A stretch of DNA of 64,000 nucleotides from Ophelia neglecta (Eukaryota), in the NCBI GenBank assembly GCA_965285935.1, contig OZ260664.1, forward strand, positions 12,586,001 through 12,650,000, read 5' to 3'. The position numbers were made by a program, and so were the translations under genes. The notes beneath the pieces are model-generated. The model had not been told where the DNA came from and did not search any database. It worked only from the letters and a program-made list of their open reading frames with translations. Positions 36,423 through 64,000 of this stretch are shown here, one piece after another (positions within the stretch are counted from its first letter, which is position 1; the number at the start of each line of letters is the position of its first letter).

Positions 36423-36515
36423 TGTAAACGGTGAAATCCATAATTATAGGCGATTTGTAAACAGGTGTAAATACCTTGTAAAGATCTCAAATTGTAAATA
36501 TAGGTCAACTGTAAA
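36423..36515 (+). promoter_or_regulatory. Cluster of six TGTAAA motifs, two being TGTAAATA (Pumilio-element consensus), downstream of the ETS stop
   Basis: TGTAAA at 36423, 36456, 36466, 36477, 36493, 36510; AATAAA signals near 36264, 37048 and 37243. Confidence 0.4.
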
Positions 36516-37473: not shown

Positions 37474-37638
37474 TTGTTGTTGTTGTTTGGGGTTTTACGT
37501 GGCTTTCAACACTTATCGGTCATATCACCAAGGTGCCTACTTGTGACAGTGGGCTCAATGCCCTCTTTATAGTGTTGCCTCACTGGAGTACCTGCCGTAG
37601 ACACCAGACAGGGAACCCCACCCAGTCACCTTTATACT
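37474..37638 (-). mobile_element. 5'-truncated copy of the tRNA-derived SINE at 44494
   Basis: Near-identical to 44494-44655 (GGGTTTTACGTGGCTTTCAACACTTATCGG...CCCAGTCAC) with a (TTG)n tail; lacks the tRNA head. Confidence 0.85.
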
Positions 37639-37644
37639 ATAGAC

Positions 37645-37890
37645 AGGCAGGGGATAGGCCTTCACAATTCAATTGTTTAATGTTCTCGGGCAGGGGATAG
37701 GCCTTCACAATTCAATTGTTTAAGGTGTTCGGGCAGGGAATAGGCCTTCACAATTCAATTGTTTAAGGTGTTCGGATAGGGGATAGGCCTTCACAGTTAA
37801 ATAGTTAAATTTACTCGGGCAGGGGATAGGCCTTCACAAGTCAATAGTTAAATGTACTCGGGTAGGGGATAGACTTGCATAATTCAATTT
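37645..37890. repeat. 43-bp minisatellite (GGGCAGGGGATAGGCCTTCACAATTCAATTGTTTAAGGTGTTC-like), 6 copies
   Basis: Units start near 37645, 37688, 37731, 37774, 37817 and 37860; a further partial unit at ~37455 precedes the SINE fragment. Confidence 0.9.
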
Positions 37891-38490
37891 TTAAATGAAT
37901 ATGACTATGGGAAATAGGTTTGGAATGTTTGGGAATAGTATGAAGCTGGTAGAGACGGTGTTTGAGATGACTCATTGCCCCCTCTCTAGTAGAATCTTAA
38001 TGGAATAGATCCAAGGAATATTACTATAAGGCCATGTGGTAACTACTCCTGCAAAACTTTGGTTTTCAAAATAAAATATGAAAGCAGAACCGAAAGAAAT
38101 GTTTCGCTGCACGGTGTCCGTTGTTTATTCGCATTCAAATACAATTATAAGAAATATGTTCAATAACAACCAAATTTTTAATAAACGTAGATGCTGCACG
38201 CCCTTAACTAAGTTAGGCCTACAGAAAAATAGTTTGAAAACTACTCATAGGCCTATTAAATGTTGTTTGAACCATGCTATGCTGCTCAAAGCAAGGCTGT
38301 CTAATACTGCTTTAGTTTCCTGGGAAATTGGAGTGATATCTCGGTCGAAATATACTACTTACCTGAGTGCACTATTAACTATAAAATACAAAAGTAGCTA
38401 GGTGATACTACTCGAATGCATATCAATAAATAAGTCTTTCCATTATCACAGTCCCCACGGCGATGCCGTGTCACTTAATTAGTCAAACCA

Positions 38491-41400
38491 TCAATGAATG
38501 GTAAATTTGAAAAATATAGCACGTTTTCGTTCCATATCGCTGGTTTGAACGGCTATGAATTTATCACCAGGTAGAAAGTGAACCGTGTCAACGCTCATGT
38601 GAACGTAGGCCTTACACAGCAGAGTGCCCACACGCGCATCCCACACGCGCAGTGTCCGGTCATGTGACCCTGTCACCAGGTAATCTGATTGGCTGCTGAA
38701 CGAGGCTGACGAGACCTGTGTAAGAATCAACAAGAAAATGCTGCAGAGTTGAATATTAAACATTAGTAGACGAAAGGCTACTTTAAATCTCTAATTTTAA
38801 ATGGTATTATTAAACTAAATTTCAATTACAACTAACCACATTAGAATGCCCTTTTAAGTACAAAGTAGAGGCAAACTTGGCACTGTCGTCTGCAGATTTC
38901 GTCCAGAGCACAATTGATCCTTGTTTATTTCCTGTTGCAATCGAGTTGCGATCGGTACTGGCGGTTACCATAGTAACCGGCAGTGTCAGAACCTCGTCCA
39001 CAGATATGTCCAGTTTTTTCCAGTAGTGATGGAGAGGTTTCTCAGGCCAATGTCCCGTCTTGGCATCTTTTAACTCTATTGGGTAAACAGCAGGAGGTTG
39101 CCATAGATACACGTCTCCATAGCAACCTAACAGAACACCCCGACAATGACCCCCATCTTCTCCAGCGTTTGATACTGAAAACACCTGGAGGTTTTTTGAT
39201 GCTTTCTGCTTAGCTATTCTATCCTCAAACTGACATGTCAACATTTTGCCAGTCTGGACAGAGATGGCCACCGCAGAGTAGTGTGGTACTCCAAGGCTTG
39301 TTGTTTGGGGGTTTACAAGGCCCACGATGTGTTCTTCCTCCGAACCTGCCAATGATGTACATAATGTGATATCGCCTATCAGGTTGCCAATGGCGACGCT
39401 GTTCACTGATTCTCTCTCCACGAAATCTATTATCACCAAACGATTTGGGTCGCCTTCCTGTACAAGAGCTAATCGTTTCCCGCCGTTCAGATAACACAAA
39501 CTATTAAATTTGTCGCCAGAAACGAGGTTAGCCACCGTCTGTGCCTCCCCCGAGGGTACTTTCCAGCACACCAGTGCCCGGGAGTCCAGGTCAAGGCAGG
39601 CGAGACTGGACGAGTCAGCAGAGAAAGCCATGCTGGAGAAGGAGCCTGTCCCTAGCTGCTTGACCATAGCCAGATCCTCCCCGCTCAGAGTCCACAGGGT
39701 GACACCTCGCGTACAACCTGCAATTAGTTCGAATGGTTGTTACAAATAATTTTTAAAAGTTATCCTAAATTCACAAAGTTACGTTTTGTTCAGCTTTTCC
39801 AATCGGTAAAGTTGAAAAAAAGCCAATTTTGATTTTAAACAGTTTGGTACCGCATTCTGCCATTGGACAAATATATATTTTTTTCTGAAAATTAACTTCG
39901 GTATGAAAGATCATCTAGTCTATCTTTATCTTCATTCAGAATTTGTCCAGAGTAGCCACGGACCTTCTACAAAGAAAGAGTTCACAAGTGTTTCTTACCT
40001 ATTGCCACATGCTTTCCATCAGGACTGAAAGCTAAATGCAACACGTCTAGATCTTCCAGCCTGAGGGCGCCATCAGACTTCCGTTGGTCGACTGTCTCCT
40101 CCTCAGTGTGGGTCAGTAACTCCTCGAGGTCCCAGTACTTCAGCACTCGGTCTGAGGCGCACGTGAATACTTGGTCTCTGTCCGTACATAGGATCCGAGC
40201 GAGCGTGCCGTTGTGACATTTAATGGAGTTTTTCTGAATTTTTGAAGGAATGTCAAAGAGTTTTATCGTTCCAATTTCGTCTGCCGTAACAATGACCTGA
40301 CCGTCACTGCTCATGGAGACGGTGGTGACGGGGGCACGGGCATTGAAGGTCGCCACGTCACTCACATTGCCGATGTCGACGTCCCATACTTTGACCTCTT
40401 GTTGACCTTTGATACACGTCACCAAGATGCTATTTTGTTTGCTATATGAGCTGAGGATAGGCGATTTGATGTTCAGTTCTTTGAAGATATCGGTGACTAT
40501 CTTCCCTAGGTGCATGTCGACGATAAAGATCTGCGCGTTCTCACAGCCACACACGACAAGGTCATGACCTGCTAGCGGAGAGAGGGGATAGAGAAACCCC
40601 GGCTCCACCGGCACAGGTAGAGCTATCTTGGTCTGCAGCTGCTTACCCCAGCAATCCCATAGCACAATGCACCCTATGGTCTTCTTTTGGCCTTTAATTT
40701 TGTGTGTTGAAATGGTATGGTTGTCGTCACTGGAAAAGATAAGGTTTGTGGTCCCCACAACGCCGCTCAGGTTCATTGCGCCCCTAGCCCGATAGGGGGC
40801 GCCCTCCTCTGTCAAATCTTCCAGCAGTGCTAGCCTGTCTTTTCCCGCCAAGGCTAGATACCTGTCGTCTGAGGAGGTCGCTATGCACGAGTTGAGCTCG
40901 TCTTTATGGTTGGTGTCGGTGTTCTGAGTATGGACAACACGGCCCCTGAAACAACAAGAAGCCAATTCCCTCTTATAGCTTAATATGTAATATTGAATGC
41001 TCTCTTATGGACGGGTATCAATAATATTGTTTAAAAAGTGAGCAGGATTTAATATATTATTTCTCTTAAGTTACACACATTGGTTAAGCGATGGTAATGA
41101 TCAGATACTACTCAGAGGCAGCAGTAGCTTCTTTTCTAACGCTTTTTTCAACAAGCTTAGAACCCAAAGGTAATGGATTTCTAGTGATTAAATTACAATT
41201 ATATTGTGACCTACGTGGTCGTACTGCAGACGTGGAAGAACTTGGAACAGAGCAGGTAGAGCCTCTGTCCGTTTTTGGAGAAGACACAGTGCTTTGGAGC
41301 CAGACGACTTTTACTGGAAATGGCGCGAGTTTTGAGCTTCTCGGTGTTTAGTATGAAGAAACTTGAGATTTTCTTTTCATTCTCGCTCCTAAGTAGTAAA

Positions 41401-44033
41401 TACGACCCGTCATCTGTTTGAGCCGATATTTCCGTGACACCGTTAAGGTACCATTTGAGAAGGCTGGTAGAGGGCGCCATACAGCCCGTGATGGGGACAA
41501 GCGATGCATCGTGGGAGTTTAGTAGCACGACTTCAGCCTGGTGGCATAATTCTCGTAACATTGGTTTGTCCTTGGCCTTGTCAATTAGCTGCCCTAGTAA
41601 CTGCGTTGCCATGGAAGAAGGGTCACCGTCCAGTTGGACGCTGGAATAGCGCAGACAATTCTTAACAGACTCTACCTCCTCATCTGTGACGTCATCCATT
41701 CTCTGGATGATCTGATTGACTGAAAATACTTCAGTAAACTTTTGAAGAAAATCCATATTGCAGAAGACGTGTTCCTTCAGCGCCTGTGTATCTCCTGCGT
41801 GTTTTAAATGGTAAGGAAGTGACGTCATTCTCCGAATGTTGGACAGGACTTTAGGTTGCGGTGTGACCTGTCTGTCGGCGTCCTCTATCGTTAGTTTCCG
41901 GTGTGGCAGGTGTATGAGCCGAGTGTACCTCTCCTCAACTAAGTAGATCTCGGCTAATAATCTGTGTCTCTTCCGGAACTCCTCGCCCGATGCGTATTTC
42001 CCTTGAGCGGCCTCGGTGAACTGGCGGTGGTACCAGTTCATAGTGATCTTACCGTGCGTGTGTCTCTCCACGATGTACTCTCGAAGGTCATGACGAACGC
42101 GCGCCCACATCAGTGATGGAATACGAACCACGCCCTCTATCGGAGGGGAGTGGTACTTGTAAACTTCCTGAAGCACGGGGTCGTCACATGACAACACGTC
42201 CTCCAACTCAATCTCGCTCAGCCCATTCAATCCCAAAGTTAAATAAGCTAGACATGCGCGGACGAACACAGCACCGTACTTCCGTTCCAGCCGATCAAAT
42301 AAAGAGTTGATGGCTTCCTGGGTAGTTTTCGCCAGTCGGATTCCGGATGTGTCCGTGTACGATTTCCATGTACAGGCCTCGTCCAGCATCAGTTTCATGG
42401 GTAGAGGTTCGGGGTTGGCGGACAGAGAGGCGAGAAGAAGGCTGAACTGTGTCTCGGTGAGCTGCACGTTTTTGTTGCTCGTATATGCTTTAGCGTACAG
42501 TTCTGCCAAATTAGCAGCGTACGGCTTCAACTCGATGAAGCAACTTTCATCGTTATTAAGTCTGTCCCTGGCGTTTGACAGAATATTAAATTTGTCCGGT
42601 AAAGTGGAGACAATCAAATGGACATAGGTTGGCAACTCATCAGGCAGCCATTTGCATTTATATGCGCCCCCTTCAGGCGAAAGTTGATCCAAAGAGTCCA
42701 GGACAATCACCAGGGGGCGTGAGGAGCCATATCTGATGGCAATATAAGACAAAAGATCATTGAGGTACTTCGCCGCCTTGTTGACTTTCGTGAACTTAGA
42801 TTTATTTACCGTCTGACCATAGGCCAGGCAAATTTGTTTACACAAACTGCCTAAGACCTTCCTGATATCCGTACTCTGTGGAGACGTGCCCAGGAAACGT
42901 ACGATTGTCACACATCCTTTTAACCAGTTCTTTGCTTGCTGAGCAATTGCAGCCAAGTATGCAGTCTTTCCCAGCCCCGATTTCCCATACAGCACCAGCG
43001 GTTTTCCTTTCCCAGATCGCTTTAGTTTAAGTCTGAACTCTCCCAATTCATCATCTCGACCACAAAAAACTTCACATTTTGATTTGCAGAAATGCAAATG
43101 GTGGAGAATATCCTCACTAAGCCTCAATCTCGATTGGTCCATAACGTGCACCTTGCTGGAGGTGGCTTCTATAGCTTTGTGCTCTTGTAGCAGGTTCTGC
43201 ATGGACATGTAACCGGCGAAAATGTCATTATCAGTGGCGCCATCTGACTGGAACGGCCTCGTTTTTCCTGCTTTTGTTGGCACTTCCGCTTTGGCGTCCC
43301 TTTCGCCGAGGTTTGCTGTTAAATTGATTACTGTCGAGGCCTCCTTCATCATTTCCTTCTGCTCGTTTTCGCGGTATTCATCTAACAGTCGTTTGGTCGT
43401 CTCAGTAAATGTTGCACAGAATTTATTCAGGTATTCTTGGTGCTCTGGGTGTGACTGCGGGTCTATCCCACCCTCCTTCCATTCCGTGGTTAACCTGTGC
43501 ACGTTAGACAAGCCTAGCTTTTTCTTTATTTTAACGTTGCTCAAGTCCTTGATGAACTCTGCCGCATCTTGGTCAATGGTCTGCTCCGAGGTTTCTGGGT
43601 TCAGTGTCATGTCTGGAGAAAAATAGTCCATTTTACACGTTAGTGGTACCATGGCGTTACTTGTAATGTAATTAAAAAAGGTATAAAAATAGATAACCAA
43701 AGANNNNNNNNNNNNNNNNNNNNNNNNNNNNNNNNNNNNNNNNNNNNNNNNNNNNNNNNNNNNNNNNNNNNNNNNNNNNNNNNNNNNNNNNNNNNNNNNN
43801 NNNNNNNNNNNNNNNNNNNNNNNNNNNNNNNNNNNNNNNNNNNNNNNNNNNNNNNNNNNNNNNNAATACGATATAATTATGATAATAATGATAGGGATAA
43901 TAATAATAGTAATTAAAGTAATGAAAATATTTATTATCTGTAATGATGATTCGAAATATAAGTTATGATAATATAAAATAATAATGATAATATGATACAA
44001 TGCAACAATGAAATAAATGATAAATGGTAATAA

Positions 44034-44064
<31 letters not shown>

Positions 44065-46829
44065 TGAAACAACAACAATAATAACAATAATTAGTTTAGT
44101 GGGCGAAGAATTGTTGATAATTTATATACAGACTTTTCAATGCCTTTCTTTTACAATTTTAGCAAAACCTACCAAAGAACTTGTCTGCCAGTACCTGCCC
44201 GCTGACATTGGTACTCGTCTCCAGGTTACGTTTGATGTAAAATGCCGTCTTATCAGGGTCATCAGCCCACAGAATCCCTTTCTCGATCTCCTGTTCAGTA
44301 ACTGCAGGAAAAAAAGCGAGCTTAACAATATAGTGGATGTGTCTCATCTATATATTAGGAGTAGAGGGCCACACAATGAAGGGGCATAGTTAGAAACGTT
44401 GGCTGGCGGGTGGGGGGGGGGGGAGTCGGGAGGAGTCGGTAGTTGAATCATATATCTTCGGGTTTCATCGTTCCCCACGGTCCTTTCGATGCCTGTTGGT
44501 TGTTGTGGGTTTTACGTGGCTTTCAACACTTATCGGACATATCACCACGGTGCCTACTTGTGACAGTGGGCTCAATGCCCTCTTTAGAGTGCTGCCTCAC
44601 TGGAGTACCTGCCGTTGACACCAGACAGGGAACCCACCCAGTCACATTATACTGACACCGGGTTGACGAGTCCTGATACTACCCCCGAAATACCGGGCGC
44701 CTGGCAGGGGAGCTATCAGTACCTATTCTTACGTCTTGGGTTGACGCGATCGGGATTTGAACCCCGATCTACCACTTGCTAGGCGGACGCCCTAACCACT
44801 CGGCCATGGTTTGGTGGTTCCCTTCGATGGCAGTCAGTATTTGCATATTATACCATCTTCCTGGATCGAGTGACAAATCTAAGTGTTACATTTCAAAGAA
44901 GAGTCTTTCTATCACGGCAACATACCTGACTGGAAGTAGAGTTGCTTTCTTTCCACCGGAAGCTGGCCCTTCTCGATGGCTGACGACACACTCTGACGTA
45001 ATAGCTTTTGTAACGTAGTGCTTATCGATTTCCACTTCCGGGAGTCCTCCTTCCGTTTGTCCAGGTTCTCTTCTGAATAGTCGTTGAAGTGCGGAAGTTT
45101 GGAATTTATTGGCTGCGGAAAAACGGGAGGAAAAAAGATGCATTCAAAGAGTTGTGTAAGATGTGATCACACTACAGTAAAACAAACCGATATTAATGCT
45201 TTATTTATCTATAATAAAAAATAACATGGCAACCGGCATGACCCTTTTGCCTCAATTTGATATCAGGTCTCATTTCTTTGGCAAGAAAAGTACAATGGAA
45301 TTATGTATATTAATTACTATGTTTAAGCCACTTGATTATTAATAAATAAAGTTGAACTGTCTTCATACCTGGAGCAGATGGACTGGTGGTATTGCGTTGT
45401 TGTTTTTGAGGTACCAGTCGTCCAGCAGCTCCCTGTCGTCAAGTGAAAGGTCGTCTGCCATCCTCCGTAAAACCGCGAACTCCACGGCGTCGATCGCCGG
45501 CGGAATGGGCCTGGACCCGTAACGGTTTCCGGTCATAGCCTGGTAAAACATTGATACATAATACAAGGCTCGTACCACTGAAACAACCTTTGTCGAAATA
45601 ATAAAGATCCTTTACCCCACGGTAAGGAAGAAAGAAGTGCTCATTGTCGGGAAAATTGAATATACATGCGCATTTAACCCAATACGGTACACATAGTTTA
45701 TCCCTCTATCTATTATAAAGGCTGAGACATACTTCTATTCCAAATAATTCATTATTTTTGGTTAACACCCCTCAAGTTGTCTTTCGCCGGAATTAATCAA
45801 TCATATAAACCTGCTCCACACAAGTTACCCCCTCCCCCCCCCCCCAAAAAAAAAAGAATTCTATGTACACTGACATTATCACTGCAGAACAATCTTTTGG
45901 GGGAAAAATGGCGTCAGACGTTTGCCAAGTGCTATATAAAGATGATATAAGAATTGTAATAAATCCTGCTTACGACAAAGTTTGGTCCTCTGGAGAGCCT
46001 CTGACAGAGTTCGATCTCCCCGAGACAGATCTGCTCCACGGTGTGATCGTTAGAGGATCCCTCGGAGATACCCCAGCGCAGGTCGACCACCTGGAAGTCC
46101 AGCCCCAGCCCGGCACAGTAACCCTTCAACTCGGGGTAGGCTTGTCTCGCCAGGGCGTTACGCTCCGCCTTGAAATCTAGTCATACACGGAAGAAAATGA
46201 AGGATCAGTCGCATAATGGGATGTATTGTCAAACAGGAAAGCAAGGCTAGGCCGCGGTGTGACTGCGATCGACCGCAGTGTAACTGCGAGCATACGCGGC
46301 ATAACTGTGAGCATCCGTGACGTGACTGCGATCAACCGTGACGTAACTGCGAGCATCCGCGGGTTAACTGCGAGCATGCGCAGTGCAATCATGACTGTCT
46401 GCGAGAGGGCTGTCCAAAGTCGTGCGTTTCTGGTGGCTGGGAATATTTCAACTATGTATTAGAACTTTGGAATGATAATTGGCAGTTAATATTAATTCTT
46501 GTACTTAAAGAGTTAATAATTTAGCCATGGGTACCCCCACGTCATTGTGGCACAGTTAGCCCAAGACGGGTGGTGCCAATTACAAGAAAATTAAAGGAAA
46601 TACAGATGAAATGTGTGCAACTATCGCACGAATGTTAGATTTTTTAAAAATTCTTAATGCAGTTAAGTCAAGTTTTCTTTTAAAAAATGACCAGTTTTCA
46701 AAGTAAAAAATCATATACCAGAGAAAGTAGAACTGAGGAATATTCTGACAACAGACGATCTCTGAGGTGGTAAGTTCTCCATGTCCCCCACCAGGATGCG
46801 CTCGTATGGGTTGATAATAGAGGGAACCA
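38491..46829 (-). CDS. NACHT and WD40 repeat protein (NWD1/NWD2-like), conserved core; exons 46829-46719, 46176-45974, 45539-45369, 45112-44926, 44301-44173, 43612-41215, 40945-39999, 39717-38837, 38715-38491
   Basis: All junctions GT-AG and phase-compatible; spliced product shows DUF4062-type VRIFLSSTFSDFKAERNAL...VVDLRWG...CLGEIELC, WYLKNNNAIPP, SVTEQEI, Walker A GKSGLGKT, Walker B LVIVLDSLDQL, GLSEIELEDVLS, WYHRQF and WD40 repeats (e.g. LVTGSHDRTLRVWD). Confidence 0.92.
43704..43864. other. Assembly gap (161 N) next to an (ATA)n-rich low-complexity tract in an NWD intron
   Basis: Run of N; AT-rich sequence at 43865-44095. Flanking exons are phase-compatible, so no missing exon is required. 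Confidence 0.98.
44494..44818 (-). mobile_element. Full-length tRNA-derived SINE
   Basis: Minus strand: A box TGGCCGAGTGG, B box GTTCAAATCC, central GTGTCAGTATAATGTGACTGGGTGGG, (CAA)-type tail; degenerate 13-bp flanking duplication TCCTTTCGATGCC / TCCCTTCGATGGC; second copy at 37474. Confidence 0.88.
46259..46385. repeat. 21-bp minisatellite (GT(G/A)ACTGCGAGCATCCG...), ~6 copies, intronic
   Basis: ACTG(C/T)GA motif recurring every 21 bp. Confidence 0.75.
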
Positions 46830-50300: not shown

Positions 50301-53300
50301 GGAACTACCCTGCTTAACTCTATGTGCCTCCTTAAGGAAATTTCACTCGGCACAGCAAAATTAAAGCCAGTGCCCTCTGTTCGTTTGTCAGGTCCTTGCA
50401 GGAATCGAATCAATTGCCCGCCGAAAAGAACCCATCCTACCATTAGGAAGTGAACGCAACCATCTCTAAAAGGTACATGGGAAACTAATAGCTGTTTGTA
50501 TCATTATATGGTGTCTAACAATAATTGAAAACAAATATTTTGTGATGGGTATACGTCTTGATTCACCAAATCAAAGAAAGAACACAGGTCTCGGCAAGCA
50601 GACGGGTCTTGATCGCGGATTTTCATCATTGAACGTAAAGTCTTCTGTACCAATTAAAACCTTCCAGTTAAAGTTGTCACTCCGATTCTCTATGAGAACA
50701 ACACTTCCCTATAAGGTACCTTTTCCTTATGTTTCTTGGGTGCTTGTAATACCTAAGCTGAAGGAGGAATAGGCATTGCTGGTGTCCCTGAACAGTCAAC
50801 AATTGCCTCAACATCTGTACGGGGAGAAGCGCCTTTAAATTGACTAGATTTGTTTCTGTGCAGGGACAGAAACGTTTTTCTTTTTTTCCTTGAATTTAAT
50901 CAAGACCGGCTTCATTTTGCCAAGATGGATTAATTGTAAAGCGTGTTAGATTAAGAAACATACTTAACAAATTCAATTTTTTTTGCATGTACAAATTAAA
51001 TTGCATGAAATTCTAACGTTTATGCAACTATGTGAGAAGATGTCAGCAAGATGCATGCGATAAATTCTTGAGGAAAGTCCCATTCTTCTGAAACATGAAT
51101 GGGGACATACACACATGGTGGTAATATTTGTGAACTGAACTGTGAATTAAAATTACAGATCAGGTCAATGAAGTTATAGCCTTATGTCAACTGATCCAAT
51201 GCATTCCAGAGCATGGACCTCCTAATCATGACACGCGAACCTCCAGCGCATCACACACGAAAGGAAAAACTGCACAAATTGGCGTGTTTATTTATTTTCA
51301 GCATTGAATTAGATTATTAAGCTGGCGCTGGTACATTGTACACATTAGATTATGTAAGGGAAAATATTATCCACACTGTTGTACCTTCTCCAGAATGTAA
51401 TATCGAGTCCCTGTGGGTCAATGTTATGCAATCAAACAAAACCCCAATATTGGTTGGTACTATGTACAGGCCACCATCAGCCAGTTCTGAGTACTTTGAC
51501 AATATGTTAGACAATATTGAGGTGATGACCGCTAATTCAAATTTTATATTGCTTGGTGATCTTAATTATAATTATGTATGTGACGAGTCATTAGCCAACA
51601 ATCCAATTCACTACATCGAAAACTTATTTGCTTGTGCGCAACTAATAAGAGAACCTACTCGAGTCACTGACAAGTCATCAACCCTATTAGATGTTATACT
51701 CTCCGATATGCCAAAATCCCACTCCTCGAGTGGAGTTGTCAGATTAGCCTTAAGTGACCACTACTTGATTTATACCGTTGTTGATGTTAGAAAGATGAAG
51801 GGACCTCCTAAAATTATCACTAGACGAGATTACAACTCGTTAAACACAGATCTATTTAATCGTGATTTAAAATTAAGACTATCTTATGTATTTGACCCTT
51901 CTAAAACAGTTGCAAGCAACTGGTCCGACTGGAAAACCGCATTTCTTGCTTGCTTAGATAGGCATGCCCCGCTCCGCCAACACAGAGTGCGCGACCGTTA
52001 TAATCCATGGATTACCAGTGACATTATTAAGCGGATGTATGAAAGAGACCGAATTCACGACAAAGCCACCTTATTAAAATGTCCGACTATTATGGACCAG
52101 TATAGAGCCATTCGCAATGACATCACTGCCCAAATAAATGCCCTTGAGAAACAATATTTAGAACAGAAAATCGATGATAACAAAGGCAACTTAAAGCAAA
52201 TGTGGAAAATTTTGAAACAAACAATGGGTCAAGGTGCATCAAAATCATTGCCGAGTAATATCGATGTCAATCAATTTAATGCGTTCTTTGCAAATATCGG
52301 AGCAAAACTTGCAAACGACATCGGCCAAAAACAAATATATGATTGGAAACTTCCATCTAGCATCCACGACTTTGAATTTAAACCGGTTACTGTCACAGAA
52401 ACACTAAAACTGCTATCAAAGCTTAGCCCGGAGGAATCTAATATAGACGTACTAGGTATAGATAGCAAAGCGCTTAGCCTATCGAAATATACTATTGCTT
52501 CTAGTCTCACCTACGTGTTTAATTCGTCAATTTCAAGTGGCGAATTCCCAGATGACTGGAAGTCAGCGAGGGTAACCCCCATATTCAAGAAGAAAGGTGC
52601 GGACGATTTACCGACAAACTATCGACCCATTTCGGTTATTCCCCATATCGCCAAAATTATGGAACGTATTGTCCAAGATCAACTAAAAAATTTCTGATTG
52701 GTCACGATTTTCTCACGCATGATCAAGCCGCTTATAGACAAAATCACTCTACCCAAACATCCCTACATAGGGTACTTAGCGATCTTCTTGATGGTATCAA
52801 CGATGGTTTAGTGGGGGGAATGTGCTTCTTTGATCTCCAAAAATGTTTTGACACAATTGACCATGAGATACTACTTACAAAACTCCAACATTATGGCATC
52901 CGTAATATCCCATTTAACTGGTTCTGCAGCTACCTGAACAACAGGAAACAGGCAGTTACAGCTAATGGCAAACTATCATCATTTTTAGAATTATCATACG
53001 GTGTCCCACAAGGATCTATTCTAGGTCCAATTTTATTTCTTCTTTTCATCAATGATTTACCTTCAGCCGTATCAGATGCATTCTGCAATCTGTTTGCAGA
53101 CGATACGTCCTTGTATGCTGTCCACGAGTCCCTTGCGCTTGTTGAGTCTTCACTACAGAGAAACACTGATAAACTTGTTGCATGGTTTAGTGACAATCGA
53201 TTATCTTTAAATAAATCTAAATGTTGCGTTATGAAAGTTGGCCCTAAAAAGAAAATAAATGGTGATTCCCAACTTAAAGTCAAATTCAATGATCAACAAA

Positions 53301-56300
53301 TGGTTTCTTCTCAATATACTCAATACCTGGGGTGTACAATGGACGAAAACTTATCATGGGACAAACATTTGTCTGAGCTTTGCACCAAAGTGTCATCAAA
53401 AGTAGCGATCTTAGGCCGATTAAGACATAAAGTGAAACAATCAACACTTGTTCAAGTTTACAACACTATTATTCAACCTCATTTCGATTACTGCATCACC
53501 ATCTGGGGACAATGCACTGAAGCCAACCTTTTGAAAGTGCAGCGATTCCAAAACAGGGCAGCCCGGTTTATAACCAGTAACTTCAGCTGGAACACATCAG
53601 GTACTGCACTAGTTAAATCGCTTGGTCTTCAAACTATTGCCGAGCGTAGAGACTATTTTATGAATATCTTGACATATAAATGCCTCCACAACGCGGCCCC
53701 TCCCACCTTAAGCGACAGATTGACATATGTTGATCAATACCATTCCCGTAATACAAGACAAAGCTCAAACAAGAAACTTGTTGAATTATGCCCCCGTTAC
53801 GAAATAGCCCGCAAATCCTTCGATTATCAAGCTCCCCACTTATGGAATAAATTGCCTGGTGACGTCCGTAAATTGAATACCCTAAACCAGTTTAAAACTG
53901 CATTAAAACAATTGAACGCCAAGAACGATAGTTGTGCATGATCTCATGGCTAATTCAATTATTGGTATAAGTAAATTGCCAAATGGCTCGGTCTTGGAGG
54001 TTTTCATCCTGTATCTTACATCAAAATGGCGTAAAGAATGTATAATAAAGGTTTCCTCCAAGTTGCATGTGATAAGAAAATATTGTATATACTGTAAATA
54101 TTGTAAATACTGGACATATACATACTGTTAATAATACTTTCACGTGTACATTGTAAGCTGGGCCCCTAAGAATAACAGTTGTAAACTGATAGGGCTACCC
54201 AGGGTAAAGAAATTCAATAAATAAATAAATAAATAAATTGTTCATTAGGCATTGGAAGCATTTTTATCGATATATACCTTCACTTTACTGTGGTTTTCGC
54301 CAGTTGAACTTGGAAGAAAGGAAATATGAGGCCAAATGGTTAGACATTTTTTCAAAAATAAACGATGTTCCTGCCGACTTAACATCGCGGTTTTTGGCTT
54401 TTTAGATTCCTGAATTACTATGTCGACCTTTAGAGCTATTCAGAACGTCATGATTATTTGTGATTTTTGTCAAAAGGAGTAATTATGAGAGCTAAAGCCG
54501 TGTTGTTTACCTAATTCCCTCCGTTCATGACACGCGAACCTCCGAATTTTACTTTCGCGCTCGATTTACTCCAGGATTTACGTTCGCGCTTTCCCCCCGG
54601 GAGGAGAAGCCTGTTGTTGTAATCAAAGCATACATGATATTCACCATAACCTAGTATATATGAAAGCTTCTTTCTTTGTGTAGTACATATTTATTTGTTC
54701 TCAATTTGTCTTTGACTAGGACTAGCCTACCTTTCGTTCCCTGTACGAAGACTGCCTCTTTTCCTCGGCGGGCTCTCTGTACTGTTGGTTGTGCGGGCGT
54801 CGCGCTCTGGTGCCCAAAGTCTCGGAAGTCAAATCCCTGAGACTGGTCACCAGAGAGAGGCTTCAATTTGTGGCCAACCCTCTTACTGACAGCTAAAATC
54901 ATATAATTTCTTGAATCAACTCACAGAAATACCTTTGAGCGTTTGGATTTTTCTCCGAACATAGTCAAAAATTGAATTAATGTAAACCAGGCTGCTGGGT
55001 GTTTCCGCTACTGTGTTCAAATATCATTAATACAACAAATTATTGGACTTAGAAATAAGAAATAATATTGTTTATATTATATCAAACTAAATCCATATAA
55101 GCCAGGATAATGGTTTCAAAAGCTATGTATATACGATGTAAGATGTGTGGTGAGGAGAACCGCATTTATGGAATTATAACAAAACGTGATATATAAATAT
55201 ATATATTATACAGTACATGTTAAGTCATGCCCAAAAAAATCATTATTTTCGGGCGAAAAAAAAGTAAAGAATTTTTTTTAGTTTGGAGAGGTGCAAATAT
55301 ATTACATGTTAAACAGAATAAACTATTTCTATCAGTGTAGAGTTCAAGACCACGAACATTTTGTGGCTTCCGGGGAGGGAGGAGACGCAATTCCATTTCC
55401 GGGGACGCTGCCTCGTTTTGGCGACAAGCTGGGTCTCGTTTGGATCTTGGACGGTGGCAGAGCATCTAGTGAGGGAGGGCGATGATAAAAAAATTTAATG
55501 ATAAAGAAAACGTCAGAAAAATAATACAATTATAAAAAAAAAGTGACAACTAGCAGAAATAAAGTTTCATAGTATGGCTATCTAAAAGCAACAACATCAA
55601 CTAACCTGGTGACCTCCCACGATTTACTTACAGCTATTGGAGGGAACCAGTAAAAAAATATGTTTAAACTAATGTTAGGTACAGTGTGTCTCGAAAGCAT
55701 GTCCTTCTGTTATTAAAGGCGTACATTAGTATGTGAAGCCTAATACACAAAGGTTCATTTTTTTAGGCACACTGTATTGTAAAGATTAGCACAAGACTAC
55801 ATACTGTTATTGCGTCGATAAAAAGTTCTTGTATACAACTGATTTATCCTGTGAGTTGTGCGGTTTTGCAGATATTATTTAAAGAACGTGCATATAAACA
55901 TCCGAATTTTCTAAGGAAACTGTTTGGGAATATTTTATATAACGTTGGAGGGCAAATTAAATCGTTGTCTAACCTAAGTCAAAACGTAAATTATAAATCT
56001 ATTTTCAACACAACTTCAAGATAAATGAGTGCAAATCAGTGGTTTACACAAAATGTAACTACAGTGAAACCTGTGAATTAAGACCACCAAAGGGACTGGA
56101 AAATCCTGGTCTGATTATGGAGGTGGTCTGTTTATACAGGTTATTTAACATTGAAAGTATAGAGCAATATCCTCATATTAGTGGTCTGATTATAGAGGTG
56201 GTCTCTAAGACAGGGTTCACTGTAATAGGTTTATAAATGCTTATAAACGATCATTATTTCGGCCATAAAATGTGAGTTGGGTTAAAGAATATGAATCGAA

Positions 56301-59300
56301 ACAGGTTTATGCAAAACTGGTTACAAATTATATGCACGAATGACTCCTTTCTATTCATATAGAACGTGTACAATCATGCATGGATTAATCAAAAGAGCTT
56401 TAACAGACTGATTATGTAACATTCTTTATCAATCAATCTGCTCAATCGATATGAATGGCAATTATAGGAAGCAACGCACGAACAAGATTATCCCAGAATG
56501 CAACGGACTTACTTGATCTGCCAGGATTCAAACCACCAAGTTCGGCTGCTCCGAAATTTTGCACGCGAGGAATGGTCAACTGGAACACATGTAAATAAGG
56601 TTTTAGTGCATCATATTATATAACAGTTAATCTCTTGTATAATTAAGCAATTATGATTAAGAACAGAAACAATAGGGTTAGATGATAATACCTTCGAACA
56701 CAATTTCTAACTATTTCATGCACTTTTGTTTCAAAGTTTGTGGTGACAAACTTTATTCTTGACACCAAATAACCTTAATTTTAATTATTTTGCCCCCAAA
56801 CAAGCTTCTTTCTTTTTTCCTAAAGTCGATAAGACCTTTGATCTCGCTGATGTACATGCATGTATAGATCTGTGCATTTCGGCAATGTGCCAACTGACAT
56901 TATGTTAGCAGCAAACTACAGAATATTAGTACACATATCGTGTTTCTGATCAATCTCACGCCGTCTGGTCCGCGATTTAATCTGCCTACATATATAGTCA
57001 CACTACTGACAGACCTGATCAATAAAATAGTGTATTTAGGCAGACAGGTATATTGACACGAGCCGGTTTTGGAATTCTATTAACCTACGGGTATAAGTAA
57101 AAGAAGTAGGCATATACTATACGCTTAAAATGAAAACTTCTATATCGTTTGCTGTTGCGTAAATATTTAAGTGCTGGAATACAGAGGTTATTGGGTGAAC
57201 GTTGCACAAGTTAAATTCTTATTAATATGATTCACAAACAAATTGAAATGTTTACACCAGATCACTGATGTTAGAAAATACATGAATTCAAATTGTGTAT
57301 AACTGAGCGATGGTGAATTAAAATAAAAACTCAGTATAATTAATTATGTCTTTTTTCCACTATATCCTTCTTTATTTTCATTCCTATAGGCGCCTGTCCT
57401 ACACGGACACACTATCTCGTATCGCGCTGTCAGACACGAGATCTCGTATCGCGCTGTCAGACACGAGATCTCGTATCGCGCTGTCAGACACGAGATGTCG
57501 TATCGCGCTCTGTCCGACACGAGATCTCGTATCGCGCTCTGTCCGACACGAGATCTCGTATCGCGCTCTGTCAGACACGAGATCTCGTATCGCGCTCTGT
57601 CAGACACGAGATCTCGTATCGCGCTGTCAGACACTAGATCTCGTATCGCGCTGTCAGACACGAGATCTCGTATCTCGCGCTGTCAGACACGAGATCTCGT
57701 ATCTCGCGCTGTCAGACACAAGATCTCGTATCGCGCTGTCAGACACGAGATCTCGTATCGCGCTGTCAGACACGAGATCTCGTATCGCGCTGTCAGACAC
57801 GAGATCTCGTATCGCGCTGTCAGACACGAGATCTCGTATCGCGCTGTCAGACACGAGATCTCATATCGCGCTGTCAGACACGAGATCTCGTATCGCGCTG
57901 CTGACACGAGATCTCGTATCGCGCTCTGTCAGACACGAGATCTCGTATCGCGCTGTCAGACACGAGATCTCGTATCGCGCTGTCACACACGAGACACACG
58001 AGATCTCGTATCGCGCTGTCAGGCAAAAGATCTCGTATCGCGCTGTCAGACACTGTCACATTGCTAGTGCCCGTGACAAAGTGTTGAGTCAAAAAAGAGT
58101 CCTTGTTGTAGCGTGCATTGGCCCAAACGGGAGCCCTAGGTAAGGCGCTCCTGCTCAATGTTGTAACCCTTGGAGCGGGACCTCACCCTAATAGCTTGGT
58201 AATGGAAGTACCCCCTCCCCTCATCCCTCCCCCGGCTGCAGGACCATGGTGTACCTTTATTGTTTACTTATAACAGTGGCGGATTTAGGGGGTCGGGGCC
58301 CAGGGTGCCTGCCCGCCCCCTTTTTGCCAATAAGTGGGCCCGGACCAGGGCCTATTACTGGACCTACACAATATGCTTTCAAACAGTTGGTAACGGGGAC
58401 AATCCAGACATTTGCCTTGTCAGCATTGAAAAATTTTGCCCCCCCCCTTCCTGAAATCCTGGATCCGCCACTTTATAACCCATCCTTGTGCGTACTATAC
58501 ACGTCTTAGGTATGTGTGCCGCTAGGACTAAACAAAGTAACTAGATTAGGCTATCAAACCTCCTTCAAAACTTGTTAATAACCCGAATGATTGATATATC
58601 ACTTGACGTTTGCCAGATAAAAAGCTCAGCCGCCGTTAGACGTTTAATGTGATCGAGTAATGTTTTAATGATAAAGTGGGTAAAGATCAGGGACGGAGGT
58701 AGGGGTTTGAGGTAGACTAAGGGTGCTCGGTTCTCGGGTATAACGGGGGAGGGTAGCTCCTACCCCCGCCTTCCCTTCGACCCGCCCCACTCCCTGCCCG
58801 ACCCACAACCATCCGACTCGGAATATACCCATTAATCAATCAGTGATGATCGATAATCGATATTTATCTATCAATGGCCTGACCGAGGTAAACAGACGAA
58901 CATGTGAGGCTTTAATCTAACACGTTTAATTTCTCTGAAGGGTGCACTTAGTGTACTCGCATGAAGACTCTAAATTAATTGGACCTAAATTAATTGGAGT
59001 TCTTTCATCGAACCTAATAACATCAAGCAAAATTAAAGAAAAGATTGCAATTTTGTACTTTATATACCTTTTCCAATTATAGACCGTAGCTATAGGGCAT
59101 AGAGCTTATTCATTGTTTACGGTTTTGTTTTTCTGTACCTTTGTTTTAAGACTAAACGTCTTAATACCGAAATGTCTTAAAAGTACAAACCAAAGCAGAC
59201 CGATAGAACAACCAAATTAGGTTTATTTATCGCGTGTTTCTTAAGCCCCGCATATAAAGGTTCTGACGGTCCAGAATAAGGATGGAGGGTGTGTGACGGG

Positions 59301-60254
59301 TGTGTCCCTTAACCCCACGCTCCCCCTCCCCCACCCACCCTCACTTGGTAGAGGGGAAACCCATTCCACTAGTTCGAGACTCCCGTATAGCAACTTGTAG
59401 GCGTGTCCTTACCTCGCTACCCCTCCCACCTCAGGCGGGTCCTGACAACGAGCCGCCCCCTCCCGTCTAAAGTCGGTACTGAACCCCTTGTCTACCCCCT
59501 CCCACCTCAGGCGGTCCTAACCCCCGTGCCTATACCCCCTCCTCACCTCAGACGGTTCTCCCCCCCCCCCCCCTCTGAGCCTCCCCCTCCCGTCTGAGGC
59601 CGGTACTGAAACCCTTGTCTACTCCCTCCCACCTGAGGCGGGTCCTGACCCCCGGTCCTTCCCCTCAGGCGGGTCCTGACCCCTGGTCCTTCCACCCAGG
59701 AGGTCCTGACCCCTTGCCTACCCCTCCCGTCTAAGGCCGGTACTGAACCCCTTGTCTAACCCCTCCCACGTCAGGCGGGTCCTGACCCCCGGTCCTTCCC
59801 CTCAGGAGGTCCTGACCCCCGGTCCTTCCCCTCAGGCGGTCCTGACCCCCGGTCCTTCCCCTCAGGCGGTTCCTGACCCCTGGTCCTTCCCCTCAGGCGG
59901 TCCTGACCCCCGGTCCTTCCCCTCAGGCGGTTCCTGACCCCTGGTCCTTCCACCCAGGCGGTCCTGACCCCCGGTCCTTCCACCCAGGAGGTCCTGACCC
60001 CTTGCCTACCCCTTCCCCTCAGGAGGTCCTGACCCCCGGTCCTTCCCCCCAGGAGGTCCTGACCCCTAGCCTACCCCTTCCCCACAGGAGGTCCTGACCC
60101 CGTTCTGATCACACCCGCCATTGAAATGCCGCTCCGTCTGTTTATCTATGATTATACTCACACAGAATCAGTTCATATTTACCTGTTTTGCTACGGGAGC
60201 GAATGGGAACTCGTCGGAGGTCTTACCCCTTCCTCTAGTTTGCCTGGAATTCAT
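47398..60254 (-). CDS. Predicted N-terminal exons of the same NWD gene: 60254-60183 (ATG), 56579-56513, 55465-55358, 54892-54731, 47934-47775, 47471-47398; Pro/Ser/Lys-rich
   Basis: Six short open exons with AG/GT boundaries whose phases chain exactly (0,1,1,1,2,1) into the core, giving 5895 nt in total (1964 aa + stop). No homology motif supports them; the two most 5' exons are least certain. Confidence 0.65.
47577..47754 (+). mobile_element. MITE family A, copy 4 (intronic)
   Basis: TA|CAGTGAAACCTG ... CAGGTTTCACTG; same internal structure as the other copies. Confidence 0.85.
50050..50560 (-). pseudogene. Decayed transposase-like coding remnant inside the long-TIR element
   Basis: Reads NICFQL/LDTI**Y...FLMVGWVLFGGQLIRFLQG...NFAVPSEISLRR...EPGIL...YVLAIDGKKVAMG*TSKTGDVDMFGFEDSP with stops and a frameshift; motif order resembles the PS..L / PG / L..D region of P-element/THAP9-type transposases. 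Confidence 0.55.
51347..53941 (+). pseudogene. LINE ORF2 (partial APE endonuclease + reverse transcriptase) with one frameshift near 52690
   Basis: Motifs YRPP, LLGDLN, LSDH, PWIT, WKSARVTPIFKK, NYRPIS, FDLQKCFDTIDH, GVPQGSILGPILFLLFINDL, FADD, YLG; the two ORFs join across a 1-nt shift in the A-run at 52685-52690. Confidence 0.9.
51347..54236 (+). mobile_element. 5'-truncated non-LTR retrotransposon (L2/CR1 group LINE)
   Basis: Starts inside the APE endonuclease coding region, carries RT, a 3' UTR stem-loop-like segment and an (AAAT)n tail; interrupts the host TIR at CACATT|...|ATTG with ATT on both sides. Confidence 0.93.
56062..56222 (-). mobile_element. MITE family A, copy 5 (intronic)
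   Basis: TA|CAGTGAAACCTG ... CAGGGTTCACTG|TA. Confidence 0.85.
57409..58053. repeat. 27-bp tandem array ACACGAGATCTCGTATCGCGCTGTCAG (~23 copies, with 29-bp variants)
   Basis: Head-to-tail repeats; each unit holds the perfect 12-bp palindrome ACGAGATCTCGT and four CpGs. Confidence 0.96.
58274..58472. mobile_element. MITE family E (CAGTGGCGGAT TIR, 6-bp TSD TTATAA)
   Basis: TTATAA|CAGTGGCGGAT ... ATCCGCCACT|TTATAA (terminal G missing); related to the copy at 63186. Confidence 0.75.
59420..60100. repeat. C-rich ~30-bp minisatellite (GGTCCTGACCCCCGGTCCTTCCCCTCAGGC), regular from ~59640
   Basis: Repeated GGTCCTGACCCC and CCCCTCAGG motifs, with more divergent units at 59420-59640. Confidence 0.9.
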
Positions 60255-62128
60255 TTCACGAGGTTAGTCTAACTCCTTCGCAAATAATCCTTCTGTAGGC
60301 TTTACCTATGGTATCATGTCTATGTCCGATGACGGAGTTGATCACTTGGCAGACAAGGGCCCATATAGTTGTCACAGCTAATGTTGCCCCCATATATTTC
60401 CTGCATACAAATGATTAAATCCGTTTAATGGTGCACATAAATGCCCATATCTGCTCGGTCAGGCAATGATTGGTCCCTGTTTGGTACTTAAAAGTTCATC
60501 GCGGTTCCTATATATTTCCAGACAGTTGACAAACAAGATAAATTTTAACAACGGCCAAACCCGTTATCATGCATGCCTTAAATTAAGAGCTCTCTCCCCT
60601 GGGCAGCCACAGGGTTTATATCTTATTGCCACGGGGCCTCAAAACATTGGATTATCAAGGCCACACGGCGATCGCCTATCCAGGAGAGAGCTTGACAGCT
60701 GATCGCGTTTGTTTACTAGGTTGCCAAGCGTGGCTTTAAGCTACGGCGGAACAATAATATTATCGATATGCGTTCGTCATACATTCAAGCACTAGGGGGC
60801 GACACCATATTAGATCGATGCATGTTCATGCTATTGTTTACATAAATTTAGTACGCGTAATGTCAACTTAATTCGTTCGATTACGCGTAAGTAGGTACGC
60901 GTAAATAATCAAAACTATTGTTATTGCAAGCATATCATTGCTAGCGAAAAATCACACGTAATAAGGCGTTTTTGTTTGCATAATAGCGAAGATATATTTC
61001 ACACGGATTTCACAACACTTCTGAGGCTTGTTGTGGGGGTCTATGGGTATTTATGTTAGGCTACGTTTTCATATGAGTATCTTGATATCTTTAGAAATAG
61101 GAAGCACACTGACTTTTACCGATATATTTGGTTTGCATTAAGTCTATAGATATTAATTATTTCATGTATGTATATAAAATGTATGTGGGTGTGTGTGATC
61201 ATTTATAGGCCTATCTTAATTTGAGGAGAACAAACACATCAATAACTACATTCAAATCAAGCCTACTTGTAGCACGAAATGGTTAACTCTGACGTATTGT
61301 TTAGGTACATTTAAAATCAAACTAAACCGTTTTAGTTTGAACATTGTTTTTCTTAAATACCATAATTTCATGGAGGCAAACATGCGAGAAATCGTCGTCA
61401 AATATGATACAGCAAATGGACTCCAAAGTAATTTGAAATATATATATCGTATTGTGAAAGTCTCTGTTTTTTGCGATACCAATAACATTGAGATGCGTAA
61501 CTATAAGCTGCTTATATCCCCCCTCTGTAAGTACACCCCTCCCCCCCCCCCCCGTCCCCGCCTCTCCCCTCCCATGTGCACATAACAATGCTAAATTGGC
61601 AATCAAATCCAAGGACTATTTACTCCATTTGACGAGCTATTTTACTGGGTGAGTAGTCTTCTTCTTTAACATTTATTACAATTAAGAACAACTTTTATTA
61701 TCAAAAATTATAATGATTATTCTATAAATAAGTGACAACACCAGATGTCTGCATGAATAGTTTATTCAACTTTCTATTTCCGAACCAATAAAAACTGACA
61801 TGCAAAGCATTTGGCCAAAAACGAGGCTCGCGGGCAACTGCAAAGTTACCTATGACAAAACAGCCTGTTTTTTTTTACAGTATTGTACGATTTGAAACAA
61901 TCATAAACTACACAAAATCTAGAATTAATATGTATGAAAATAAATTCATGAGGCAAAACATACAATGACGTGTTTCTACTACGATATCGGTCAATTTTAG
62001 CACTTACTACATGGCATACGCGACTTCAATTTCAGAATTATAAGCTGTTAAAATGTATCATGTACCAATGCATTGTATATTGCATCATTTTACGCATTAG
62101 ATATTGTAAAAATAAATTGCGAAGCGTA

Positions 62129-62467
62129 AGGAAGCGGTCATTATTTATGGCCGGGGCGAGGGCGGTGAAAAATGAAAAAAAATTGCCCCCCCCCTAAGAA
62201 TGGGTAAAAAAAACTGCCCCCCCCCTAGAATAGGTCACAAAATTTGCCCCCCCCCCCCCCTAAGAATTGGTAAATTTTCGTCCCCCCCCCCCAAGAATTG
62301 CTAATTTTCGTCCCCGCCCCCCAAGAATGGGCAAATTTTCTTCCCCTCCCCCCAAGAATAGGTAAAATAAAATTTTTGCCCCCCCCCTCTAAGAATTGGT
62401 TCATTGCCCCCCCCCCCCCCCCCTGAACCACCACCTCCAACCCGGCCATAAATAATGACCGCTCCCT
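62129..62467. mobile_element. MITE with AGG(A/G)AGCGGTCATTATTTATGGCCGGG TIRs and internal C-tract repeats
   Basis: ~27-bp near-perfect inverted ends; internal AAATT..CCCCCC(T)AAGAAT repeats. Confidence 0.8.
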
Positions 62468-62543: not shown

Positions 62544-63004
62544 TTACTTGCCTCCTCCTCTATTGCGACGGCTCCGCTCTTTCTTGACGCCAGTGTTGGG
62601 GTCGCAATAGTAGTTTTGCCCGGGTTTAGGATCTTCACAGAACGTCCCACACAGTCGGCCATAGTAGTTCGGAGCGCACTCAATCCAAACCGTGGAATCC
62701 AATCTGACAAAATAAATAAAAGATGAACTGGCAAGTAATAGGAAATAGGAAAACGGAAACCTAAGACGAGCCCGTTAGTAGAAACGCCATTATATTTCCT
62801 TTAAAAAGGTACTTTCATTCATTCTATTCCGTCATAGATCAAATAAACGTGGCTTTAGACTCACTTGGTTCGCCCTTGCAGCACAACGTGAAACTGTCTT
62901 TTTGGATCGGCTGGGAAACGTACATCTGCCTTGAGAAACTCTACGAAATCGTCGGAAAAGGCGTCATCAGCGTCCCAAACCTCGACCATGAACTGGAAAC
63001 TGGA
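62544..63004 (-). CDS. Delta-like (MNNL/C2 + truncated DSL) protein, last two exons 63004-62865 and 62703-62544; 5' exons unresolved or outside the window
   Basis: Strong acceptors (ATTATTTTCAG, TTTATTTTGTCAG), donor GTGAGT, phase-2 join; product SSFQFMVEVWDADDAFSDDFVEFLKADVRFPADPKRQFHVVLQGRTKLDSTVWIECAPNYYGRLCGTFCEDPKPGQNYYCDPNTGVKKERSRRNRGGGK*, matching the DSL pattern C..NYYG..C..FC......Y.CD..G.K. Confidence 0.8.
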
Positions 63005-63185
63005 CTGAAAATAATTTATGAAAGAACGTTAAATTTGTCTGCGAAATATTCGAAAAAGTGGTGGAGAATTATAATATAATTTGACTTAACCTGACCCATA
63101 TATCTAGGCTTGATGATAGCACGAGCATGTAGCCTAGTTTTATTAATCTTTTTTAACTACAAGCGCTTACAAGCTATAATAGTAG

Positions 63186-63384
63186 CAGTGGCGGATCCAG
63201 GATTTCAGGAAGGGAGGGGGCCCAAATTTTCCAAGGCTGACAAGGCAAATGTCTGGATTGTGCCCGTTAGTAACCCTCTAAAACCACCTTGCGTGGGTCA
63301 AGAAATAGGTCCTGGTCCAGGCCCACTTTTTGGCAAGGGGGGGGGGGGAGCTGGCCCCCTGCCCCCCCCCTGAATCCGCCACTG
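63186..63384. mobile_element. MITE family E (CAGTGGCGGAT TIR, 6-bp TSD TAGTAG)
   Basis: TAGTAG|CAGTGGCGGATCCAGG ... TGAATCCGCCACTG|TAGTAG. Confidence 0.85.
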
Positions 63385-64000
63385 TAGTAGCCACGTGTTT
63401 AAGTACAGTTAGACTTAGACACCCGGATCTGTCGTTCGGACGTGCCTACCCATGATATAACATATAACCCTGTCAGATCTAATGACCTTGAGGAGAGCGA
63501 ATGTATATATCTCTCACTGAGATCCTGTTGGTTGTCATAATTGTAAAGGCAGTAACCCCTCATATCAAGTCACTGTCATCAAATACGGAGATATACATAA
63601 TATCAAATAACGTGATACTCTATTTTTATTACCCTGGTTATATGTCAGAGGACAAAGCTTTGATTTCACTGTATACTAAACCCGACTGAATGGAGCGGGT
63701 TCGTGTAATTTGTCAGTAGAGCCATTCTCGTTGATACAACCCACTTTTACTGATAATGTATGTATAGGCCTATATATGTCGGAACCGACATCGCGGACAC
63801 TTTTTTACCCCCCCCCCCCCCCCCCATTAGCGCAGTCAAAACTGTTGCCTCACTTCCCAGATCAAAATAAGCGTATAGGATCGCGCGGATTGAAAAAATG
63901 TTTCAATGGTGGTTAAAACTTTCCAAACAACGTTGCGAGGGCGCGTCATGAATTTAGATGAGAGGATACAGTGAAGCGCATTACAAAAATGTGCAGGGCA

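Follow-up and report, generated by a model that had tools for sequence, protein, structure and literature searches.

On the minus strand of a 64,000-nucleotide stretch of DNA (G000:C7:12586001-12650000, hereafter the window), we found what appears to be an unannotated five-exon, 217-codon gene. With a probability of roughly 0.55, it is a maintained gene for a secreted protein of 217 aa that consists of an MNNL domain and half of a DSL domain, and that would have been derived by truncating a Delta-headed lectin gene.

All searches were run exon by exon. The first-pass annotation had described two unannotated exons that splice together, and the sequence and the translation both agree with that description on the minus strand, where a GT..AG intron joins them. 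When the model was extended past position 64000, three more exons (0, A and B) were located by tblastn against paralogues; all three are intact and lie outside the window, and they include the ATG and a signal-like exon. The features of the resulting gene model are as follows.

Window-equivalent 68225-68175 (C7:12654175-12654225), minus strand: exon 0, with the ATG, encoding MTGLYLVLIVVLCSSIK, donor gttagt.
Window-equivalent 67850-67690 (C7:12653690-12653850), minus strand: exon A, which matches Pfam MNNL.
Window-equivalent 65539-65398 (C7:12651398-12651539), minus strand: exon B, the remainder of MNNL.
63005-64000 within the window, minus strand: the portion inside the window of an intron of 2.4 kb that separates exon B from exon C; exons 0, A and B are past the window edge.
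62865-63004, minus strand: exon C, the fourth coding exon, with the last MNNL/C2-like strands, SSFQFMVEVWDADD...VLQGRT plus 2 nt of a Lys codon.
62704-62864, minus strand: the intron between exons C and D, 161 nt, gtgagt...ttgtcag.
62544-62703, minus strand: exon D, the last recognisable exon, with a linker, DSL Cys1-Cys4, the tail KKERSRRNRGGGK and TAA.

The open frame comprises 651 nt (51+161+142+140+157 for exons 0/A/B/C/D), that is, 217 codons. Every donor and acceptor of the four introns is canonical, and the phases are compatible across the five exons. Exon C is bordered by the acceptor ..ttttcag|TCC and the donor AA|gtgagt (phase 2), and exon D by the acceptor ..ttgtcag|A at 62703 and the stop codon TAA at 62546-62544, with the codons for DSL Cys1-Cys4 at 62678-62604. 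The joint translation of exons C and D reads ...FQFMVEVWDADDAFSDD...VLQGRT-K-LDSTVWIE-C-APNYYGRL-C-GTF-C-EDPKPGQNYY-C-DPNTGVKKERSRRNRGGGK, followed by TAA. The product of exon 0 is hydrophobic and signal-like by eye, and its donor and sequence are conserved in the first exon of the paralogue.

The predicted protein resembles canonical Delta and Jagged in its MNNL/C2-like segment with CC...C...C, in the DSL start C-x3-YYG-x2-C-x3-C and, as judged by eye, in a putative signal peptide. Of the two Pfam domains, MNNL (PF07657) was recovered on exon A at 28.3 bits, above the cut-off of 22.5, while DSL (PF01414) on exon D fell short of its cut-off of 24.2 (20.1 bits, E=8e-4) and aligned to profile positions 1-29 of 46 only. 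The MNNL/C2-like segment suggested in the first-pass annotation is further borne out by a nine-copy profile of exon C, which aligns to residues 121-150 of the metatranscriptome protein P0032, within the Pfam MNNL match of that protein. BLASTP of exon C alone against the Owenia fusiformis protein CAH1802880.1 missed the homologous stretch, which the profile comparison recovered; exon D shows 42% identity to the DSL of the same protein (E 5e-5).

The early end of the DSL domain after Cys4, the basic tail and the stop are all seen in the translation. The six-cysteine DSL is incomplete in the window copy, in which the Cys5 codon is CGC and the exon with Cys6 is absent. DSL cysteines pair consecutively (1-2, 3-4 and 5-6), as given in PMC3415683; the window protein has 10 cysteines after the signal peptide, in keeping with the earlier argument that loss of the 5-6 pair leaves none unpaired. 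The half DSL is followed by a predicted basic tail of 19 residues. Within the tail KKERSRRNRGGGK (62547-62582, minus strand), R-S-R-R fits the furin-type cleavage consensus by eye, and the terminal Gly-Lys could be an amidation-type end, also by eye.

Two trivial origins of the model were rejected. A chance open reading frame was discarded on the conservation of exons C and D in paralogues of the same genome, with E values down to 1e-18 to 1e-30 and 60-80% amino-acid identity; the matches of exon C have 57-66% identity (E 1e-10 to 1e-17). An assembly error was discarded on DNA contigs from three runs of one sample, which show no difference over the end of exon D; these independent contigs reproduce the extra 12 nt and the stop of this exon. 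A search for public sequencing runs that contain the locus found these three alone, and all of them look like DNA.

The window gene is a dispersed copy of a family that is clustered on contig C1. The family exon set was found in six copies in the C1:125.448-125.513 Mb cluster and in one copy each on C9, C5 and C8, and tblastn together with splice-site comparison showed that exons 0, A, B, C and D, with matching phases and intron positions, are common to the window copy and the family. Full family members have a signal peptide, an MNNL domain, a six-cysteine DSL, a Thr-rich mucin stalk and a C-terminal fibrinogen-related domain, and are without EGF repeats or a transmembrane helix. The DSL exon of the paralogues reaches Cys5 and closes with x-x-G|gt; the next exon opens with GWxGxxC, by which the DSL is completed, and continues as a Thr-rich mucin-like stretch. 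After the stalk, five Fibrinogen_C exons (Pfam 25-49 bits per exon) were found in c1g1, g2, g3, g5, g6 and the C8 copy, while in the C5 copy fibrinogen is replaced by a chitin-binding CBM_14 domain (31.9 bits). In the C9 copy and in c1g4, the stalk is present and the fibrinogen domain is absent.

Several further observations were made on these copies. The C1 cluster (G000:C1:125448000-125513200; L009-L014, L029, L030) contains six tandem genes, five of them with a fibrinogen-related domain, and also holds two extra fibrinogen-domain units and a mucin-like repeat of ~3 kb (c1 positions 32304-40919). The C5 copy (L031, G000:C5:60668001-60678000, positions 1227-4481) is a more distant member with the same MNNL-DSL head, a Ser/Thr/Pro-rich exon and then CBM_14, and in its DSL the GWxGxxC motif reads G-VTGENC. 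Both c1g4 (L013 7297-8119) and c1g3 (L011 6719-7200) have no GT at the family's DSL donor; they appear to read through a basic linker (..KKYPRKFSPLKGG / ..FRKSHKKGGRK..) into a new phase-1 donor. The copy c1g4, with the GWxG motif lost and no fibrinogen domain, is a second shortened copy.

The exon A profile gave 107 matches among 1.84 billion representative proteins, none of which exceeded 63% identity to exon A in this protein library search; among named proteins, the closest are those of annelids, nemerteans and one gastropod, which makes a lophotrochozoan source probable. The matches include the following architectures.

P0032, metatranscriptome: MNNL-DSL-EGF-stalk-Fibrinogen_C.
P0013 and P0001, metatranscriptome: MNNL, a DSL cut to the first loop, Fibrinogen_C.
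P0017, metatranscriptome: MNNL-EGF-C-type lectin.
CAH1802880.1, Owenia fusiformis: MNNL-DSL-polyThr-Fibrinogen_C.

The Owenia protein (partial), P0032, P0013 and P0001 are of the same family type as the full-length paralogues and share their head and Thr-rich stalk. P0013 and P0001 have a reduced DSL that ends after the first loop, yet they keep both Fibrinogen_C and the stalk, neither of which is present in the window copy. Taken at the level of domain architecture, the family would seem to be a secreted 'Delta head' on a mucin stalk, so far undescribed, in which glycan-binding domains (fibrinogen, chitin-binding or C-type lectin) are interchangeable. No mention of MNNL together with fibrinogen was found in the searchable literature, and 'DSL-like' proteins with extra domains were explicitly set aside by Gazave et al. 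(PMC5356439).

In a partitioned ML tree built on exons A-D, the window copy came out as sister of the full-length c1g1 (UFBoot 97), within the fibrinogen-bearing clade. Because the window copy is nested in this position, the truncation is derived. Its trace is visible in a MAFFT alignment with six paralogues.

62556-62579, minus strand: remodelled end of the DSL exon.

Five of the six aligned paralogues keep TGY-xxx-xxx-G|gt at the end of the DSL exon. The window copy has 12 extra nt at 62579-62568, which encode ERSR; the former Cys5 codon has become CGC, that is, Arg, at 62567-62565; and the former donor G|GT has become G|GA at 62558|62557-62556, with the stop 11 nt beyond. Arg in place of an orphaned Cys5 is the change that would be expected under selection on a truncated product. 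Between the 3' flank and the intron of the sister copy, a stretch of 15 nt matches collinearly at an offset of 11 nt; its score of 20 is no better than that of shuffled sequences (maximum 22), so that its fit to a 12-nt insertion is suggestive only. Past the MITE-like insertion described below, the comparison of the 3' flank with the sister intron gave no alignment signal.

The exons that follow the DSL exon elsewhere in the family were searched for downstream. Motif scans, ORF scans and tblastn with paralogue ORFs found no GWxGxxC, Thr-rich, EGF, fibrinogen or CBM14 exon in window positions 1-62544 on either strand; tblastn with the five fibrinogen exons of c1g1 recovered every other copy and nothing in the window; and no EGF-like Cys-rich ORF or transmembrane exon was found within 62 kb downstream. 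These searches bear on whether the gene continues through a second donor that can be read directly in the tail.

62546-62552, minus strand: candidate GC-type donor GAG|GCAAGT, from which an intron would begin at 62551.

If this donor were used, the basic tail and the stop would be intronic and the gene would join unrecognised, non-homologous 3' exons. The site GAG|GCAAGT at 62551 fits the strong consensus seen in GC-AG introns, its phase 1 equals that of the family's junction between exons D and E (judged against the exon E acceptors of the paralogues), and c1g3 and c1g4 also seem to have shifted their donor downstream, beyond the basic linker. However, a partner exon of any of the five recognisable types is missing from the 62,544 nt searched, the introns at the equivalent place in the paralogues are only 150-400 nt long, and the downstream DNA consists of a MITE, minisatellites, a LINE and then a NACHT-WD40 gene. 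We therefore regard such a continuation as improbable, and read the TAA at 62546-62544 as the probable end of the protein.

Two features of the DNA past this stop matter for the argument.

62129-62467, no strand assigned: MITE-like insertion with 39-nt terminal inverted repeats (85% complementarity), 77 nt past the stop.
61761-61766, minus strand: first canonical AATAAA in a pattern scan, only a possible poly(A) signal.

The AATAAA lies ~780 nt from the stop, or ~440 nt without the MITE. The MITE family is dispersed, with at least 115 genomic matches of 70-93% identity, and the element at 62129-62467 holds internal G-run repeats. Beyond it, the order is minisatellites, a LINE endonuclease/RT and the NACHT-WD40 gene. 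Minisatellite-like blocks lie at 57638-58055 and 59400-60110, of which the latter is GC-rich (0.53) and yields long artefactual minus-strand ORFs. On the plus strand at 51336-53938, ORFs match Exo_endo_phos_2 and RVT_1, that is, ORF2 of a non-LTR retrotransposon. On the minus strand at 38825-44087, an NLR-like gene encodes a NACHT/AAA_16 NTPase and an NWD1-like winged helix followed by WD40 repeats; it is interrupted by an N run at 43704-43864.

As to whether the locus is a gene or a relic, the five exons look constrained by their substitution pattern. Compared with c1g1, the window copy has a dN of 0.155 and a dS of 1.01; the dN/dS of 0.15 (0.12-0.21 per exon) is typical of the family, in which pairwise values range from 0.06 to 0.26. 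Among 58 sites that do not vary in any of the other copies, the window copy has a single private change, equal to full-length members. All 10 cysteines and all splice sites are retained, and the upstream exons carry no disabling mutations. In a neutral simulation, the probability that the frame, the ATG and the splice sites all survive was 0.41 at 2% divergence, 0.11 at 5% and 0.01 at 10%, and was lower still once indels were allowed. The first-pass annotation had taken the intact frame and splice sites as a sign of maintenance rather than decay, and the dN/dS against c1g1, the simulation and the conserved sites together favour maintenance over long decay.

Differences between the haplotypes of one sample agree with this picture. 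At least four were found in exon A, and all four listed are at third positions and synonymous by codon count; among the listed differences, none falls in exon C, and four heterozygous SNPs (L018 492, 503, 544, 572) fall in the 161-nt intron. As drawn from the listed differences, this pattern in exons A and C versus the intron backs constraint in a supportive role only.

A recently dead or never-expressed relic, with upstream exons too young to have decayed, would look similar in some respects, and we consider it rather unlikely. Such a relic would account for the absence of exons that every fibrinogen-bearing paralogue needs, for the joint loss of the GT donor, Cys5 and the GWxGxxC exon, and for a MITE just past the stop with the first AATAAA ~780 nt away. 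The nonsynonymous rate is also above that of the sister copy: the terminal branch of the window copy is ~1.7x the sister's (dN about 0.10 vs 0.055), which could reflect some relaxation, and the dS of three-taxon branches is unstable because synonymous sites are saturated. A very recent inactivation, at ~1-2% divergence, fits the neutral simulation. In contrast, at a dS of ~1 from the nearest paralogue, the copy has lost none of its cysteines and none of eight splice dinucleotides, and its frame and ATG are intact, whereas neutral evolution allows such intactness only below about 2-5% divergence, and the conserved sites are preserved as well as in full-length copies. The 3' end also argues against a relic, having changed beyond what this neutral-divergence bound permits: the last ~25 nt of the DSL exon contain an insertion and depart by several substitutions from positions that five paralogues conserve. 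This remodelling suggests that the truncation came before any release of the upstream exons from constraint. An equivalent short gene in Capitella likewise speaks against a relic.

The Capitella teleta protein is ELU11574.1 (UniProt R7UZ33), a 'Notch ligand N-terminal domain-containing protein' of 197 aa, similar in size to the window protein. It has a signal peptide, an MNNL domain and a DSL that stops two residues past Cys4, and at its locus (L038; KB296609.1, 6001-6973) a genuine TAA at 6950-6952 follows ...TCED, with an AATAAA beginning at 6968, 16 nt later. The first-pass annotation had suggested a search for orthologues with the same truncation; a similar architecture was found, but not in an orthologue, as ELU11574.1 differs from the window gene in having only ~49% identity in exon A, no basic tail and 9 rather than 10 cysteines. 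Since the window copy is nested among the paralogues of its own genome, the head-only architecture that it shares with Capitella is convergent rather than orthologous. Physella acuta has a protein of 195 aa with MNNL only (XP_059140719.1).

Lineage-specific duplication and shortening of Delta-type genes is known from other lophotrochozoans, among which DSL expansions occur and the mollusc 'Delta2' is a Delta duplicate shortened by early termination (PMC8166818). The window gene is like Delta2 and the 'DSL-like' cases of Gazave et al. in this respect (PMC8166818, PMC5356439), whereas those proteins, unlike the window copy, retain DSL and EGF; fibrinogen partners, chitin-binding partners and a DSL that breaks off after Cys4 are mentioned in neither source. 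Judged by these comparisons, the head-only architecture is not unique, and the window gene is a new case, independent in origin, of a kind that is still uncharacterised. Elsewhere in the genome, dense arrays of DSL hits lie at C5:24226375-24242021 and C5:73822780-73841042 (on C5, at least twelve within 16 kb), and more than 15 weaker DSL hits are spread over 0.7 Mb at C7:89126891-89829418; the C5 and C7 arrays resemble the DSL tandem-repeat genes known from bivalves (PMC8166818).

The first-pass annotation had further proposed a Notch ligand, modulator or decoy, and this part of the proposal found no support. On this reading the product would be a secreted mini-Delta able to bind Notch EGF11-12, acting in solution as an agonist, antagonist or decoy, which we consider very unlikely. 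Notch ligands bind their receptor with their MNNL and DSL modules (PMC3415683, PMC5538765). C. elegans has secreted DSL ligands, among them DSL-1, a small, secreted DSL-family protein without a transmembrane helix, as is predicted for the window gene (PMC3415683); DSL-1, however, has a complete DSL and an EGF repeat and signals via LIN-12/GLP-1, while in the window protein the DSL is halved and EGF is absent. In the same genome, a cluster on C2 holds classical Delta-like genes with many long EGF exons, and the intron position inside the DSL, after Cys5-x-x-G, is common to these genes and the family of the window gene. The window copy itself is unlike canonical DSL ligands in having no Cys5-Cys6 loop, EGF repeats, transmembrane helix or intracellular tail.

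The residues of the receptor-binding surface also weigh against Notch binding. In Jagged-1, F199, R201, R203, D205 and F207 form the Notch-binding face (PMC3415683). Compared by sequence with solved structures, exon D gave only a weak match to Drosophila Serrate, and in a cysteine-anchored alignment to this structure (7alt_A, weak E 0.97) the equivalent residues of the window protein are F, E, P, P and Q, so that one of the five (F199) is kept and R201, R203, D205 and F207 are replaced. The full-length paralogues diverge at the same positions. The DSL match is below the Pfam cut-off with the third loop missing, EGF1-2/DOS modules are absent, and the parent family joins its head to lectin-type domains, pointing away from Notch signalling. 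Canonical Notch binding by the window protein is thus unlikely, and the family as a whole, by its domain composition, would not appear to consist of Notch ligands in the usual sense.

Within the reading of a maintained, truncated gene, the following history may be proposed. The copy would have arisen as a dispersed duplicate from the tandem C1 family and then lost everything past DSL Cys4. The unpaired Cys5 would have been replaced by Arg, with the frame continuing through the dead donor to the nearby stop, and the remaining head would have been kept under purifying selection. We infer that the head-only gene is expressed; its likeliest product would be a small secreted protein with a signal peptide, the MNNL/C2-like head, two DSL disulphide loops and the basic tail. 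In Notch ligands, the C2-like MNNL head binds both the receptor and lipid (PMC5538765). Given this dual binding, the head-only protein may work via a lipid- or partner-binding surface of its C2-like head, and it possibly competes with or modulates the full-length lectin-bearing paralogues. A broader proposal, which we put forward tentatively, is that head-only 'mini-Delta' proteins form a recurrent, selectively maintained class in annelid-like lophotrochozoans, produced by repeated 3' truncation of Delta-headed lectins and regulating, in soluble form, either those lectins or membrane binding.

Production of the short protein, if it occurs, would mean that the MNNL/C2 head and the first two DSL loops are stable and selectable by themselves, and such a stand-alone head would help to dissect the role of the head outside Notch signalling. 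The wider result outweighs the single gene: in this genome, Delta's receptor-binding head is joined to a mucin stalk and to lectin-type domains. This result cautions against counting DSL and MNNL hits as Notch ligands in lophotrochozoan genomes, and the Delta-headed lectins may be an innate-immunity or adhesion family.
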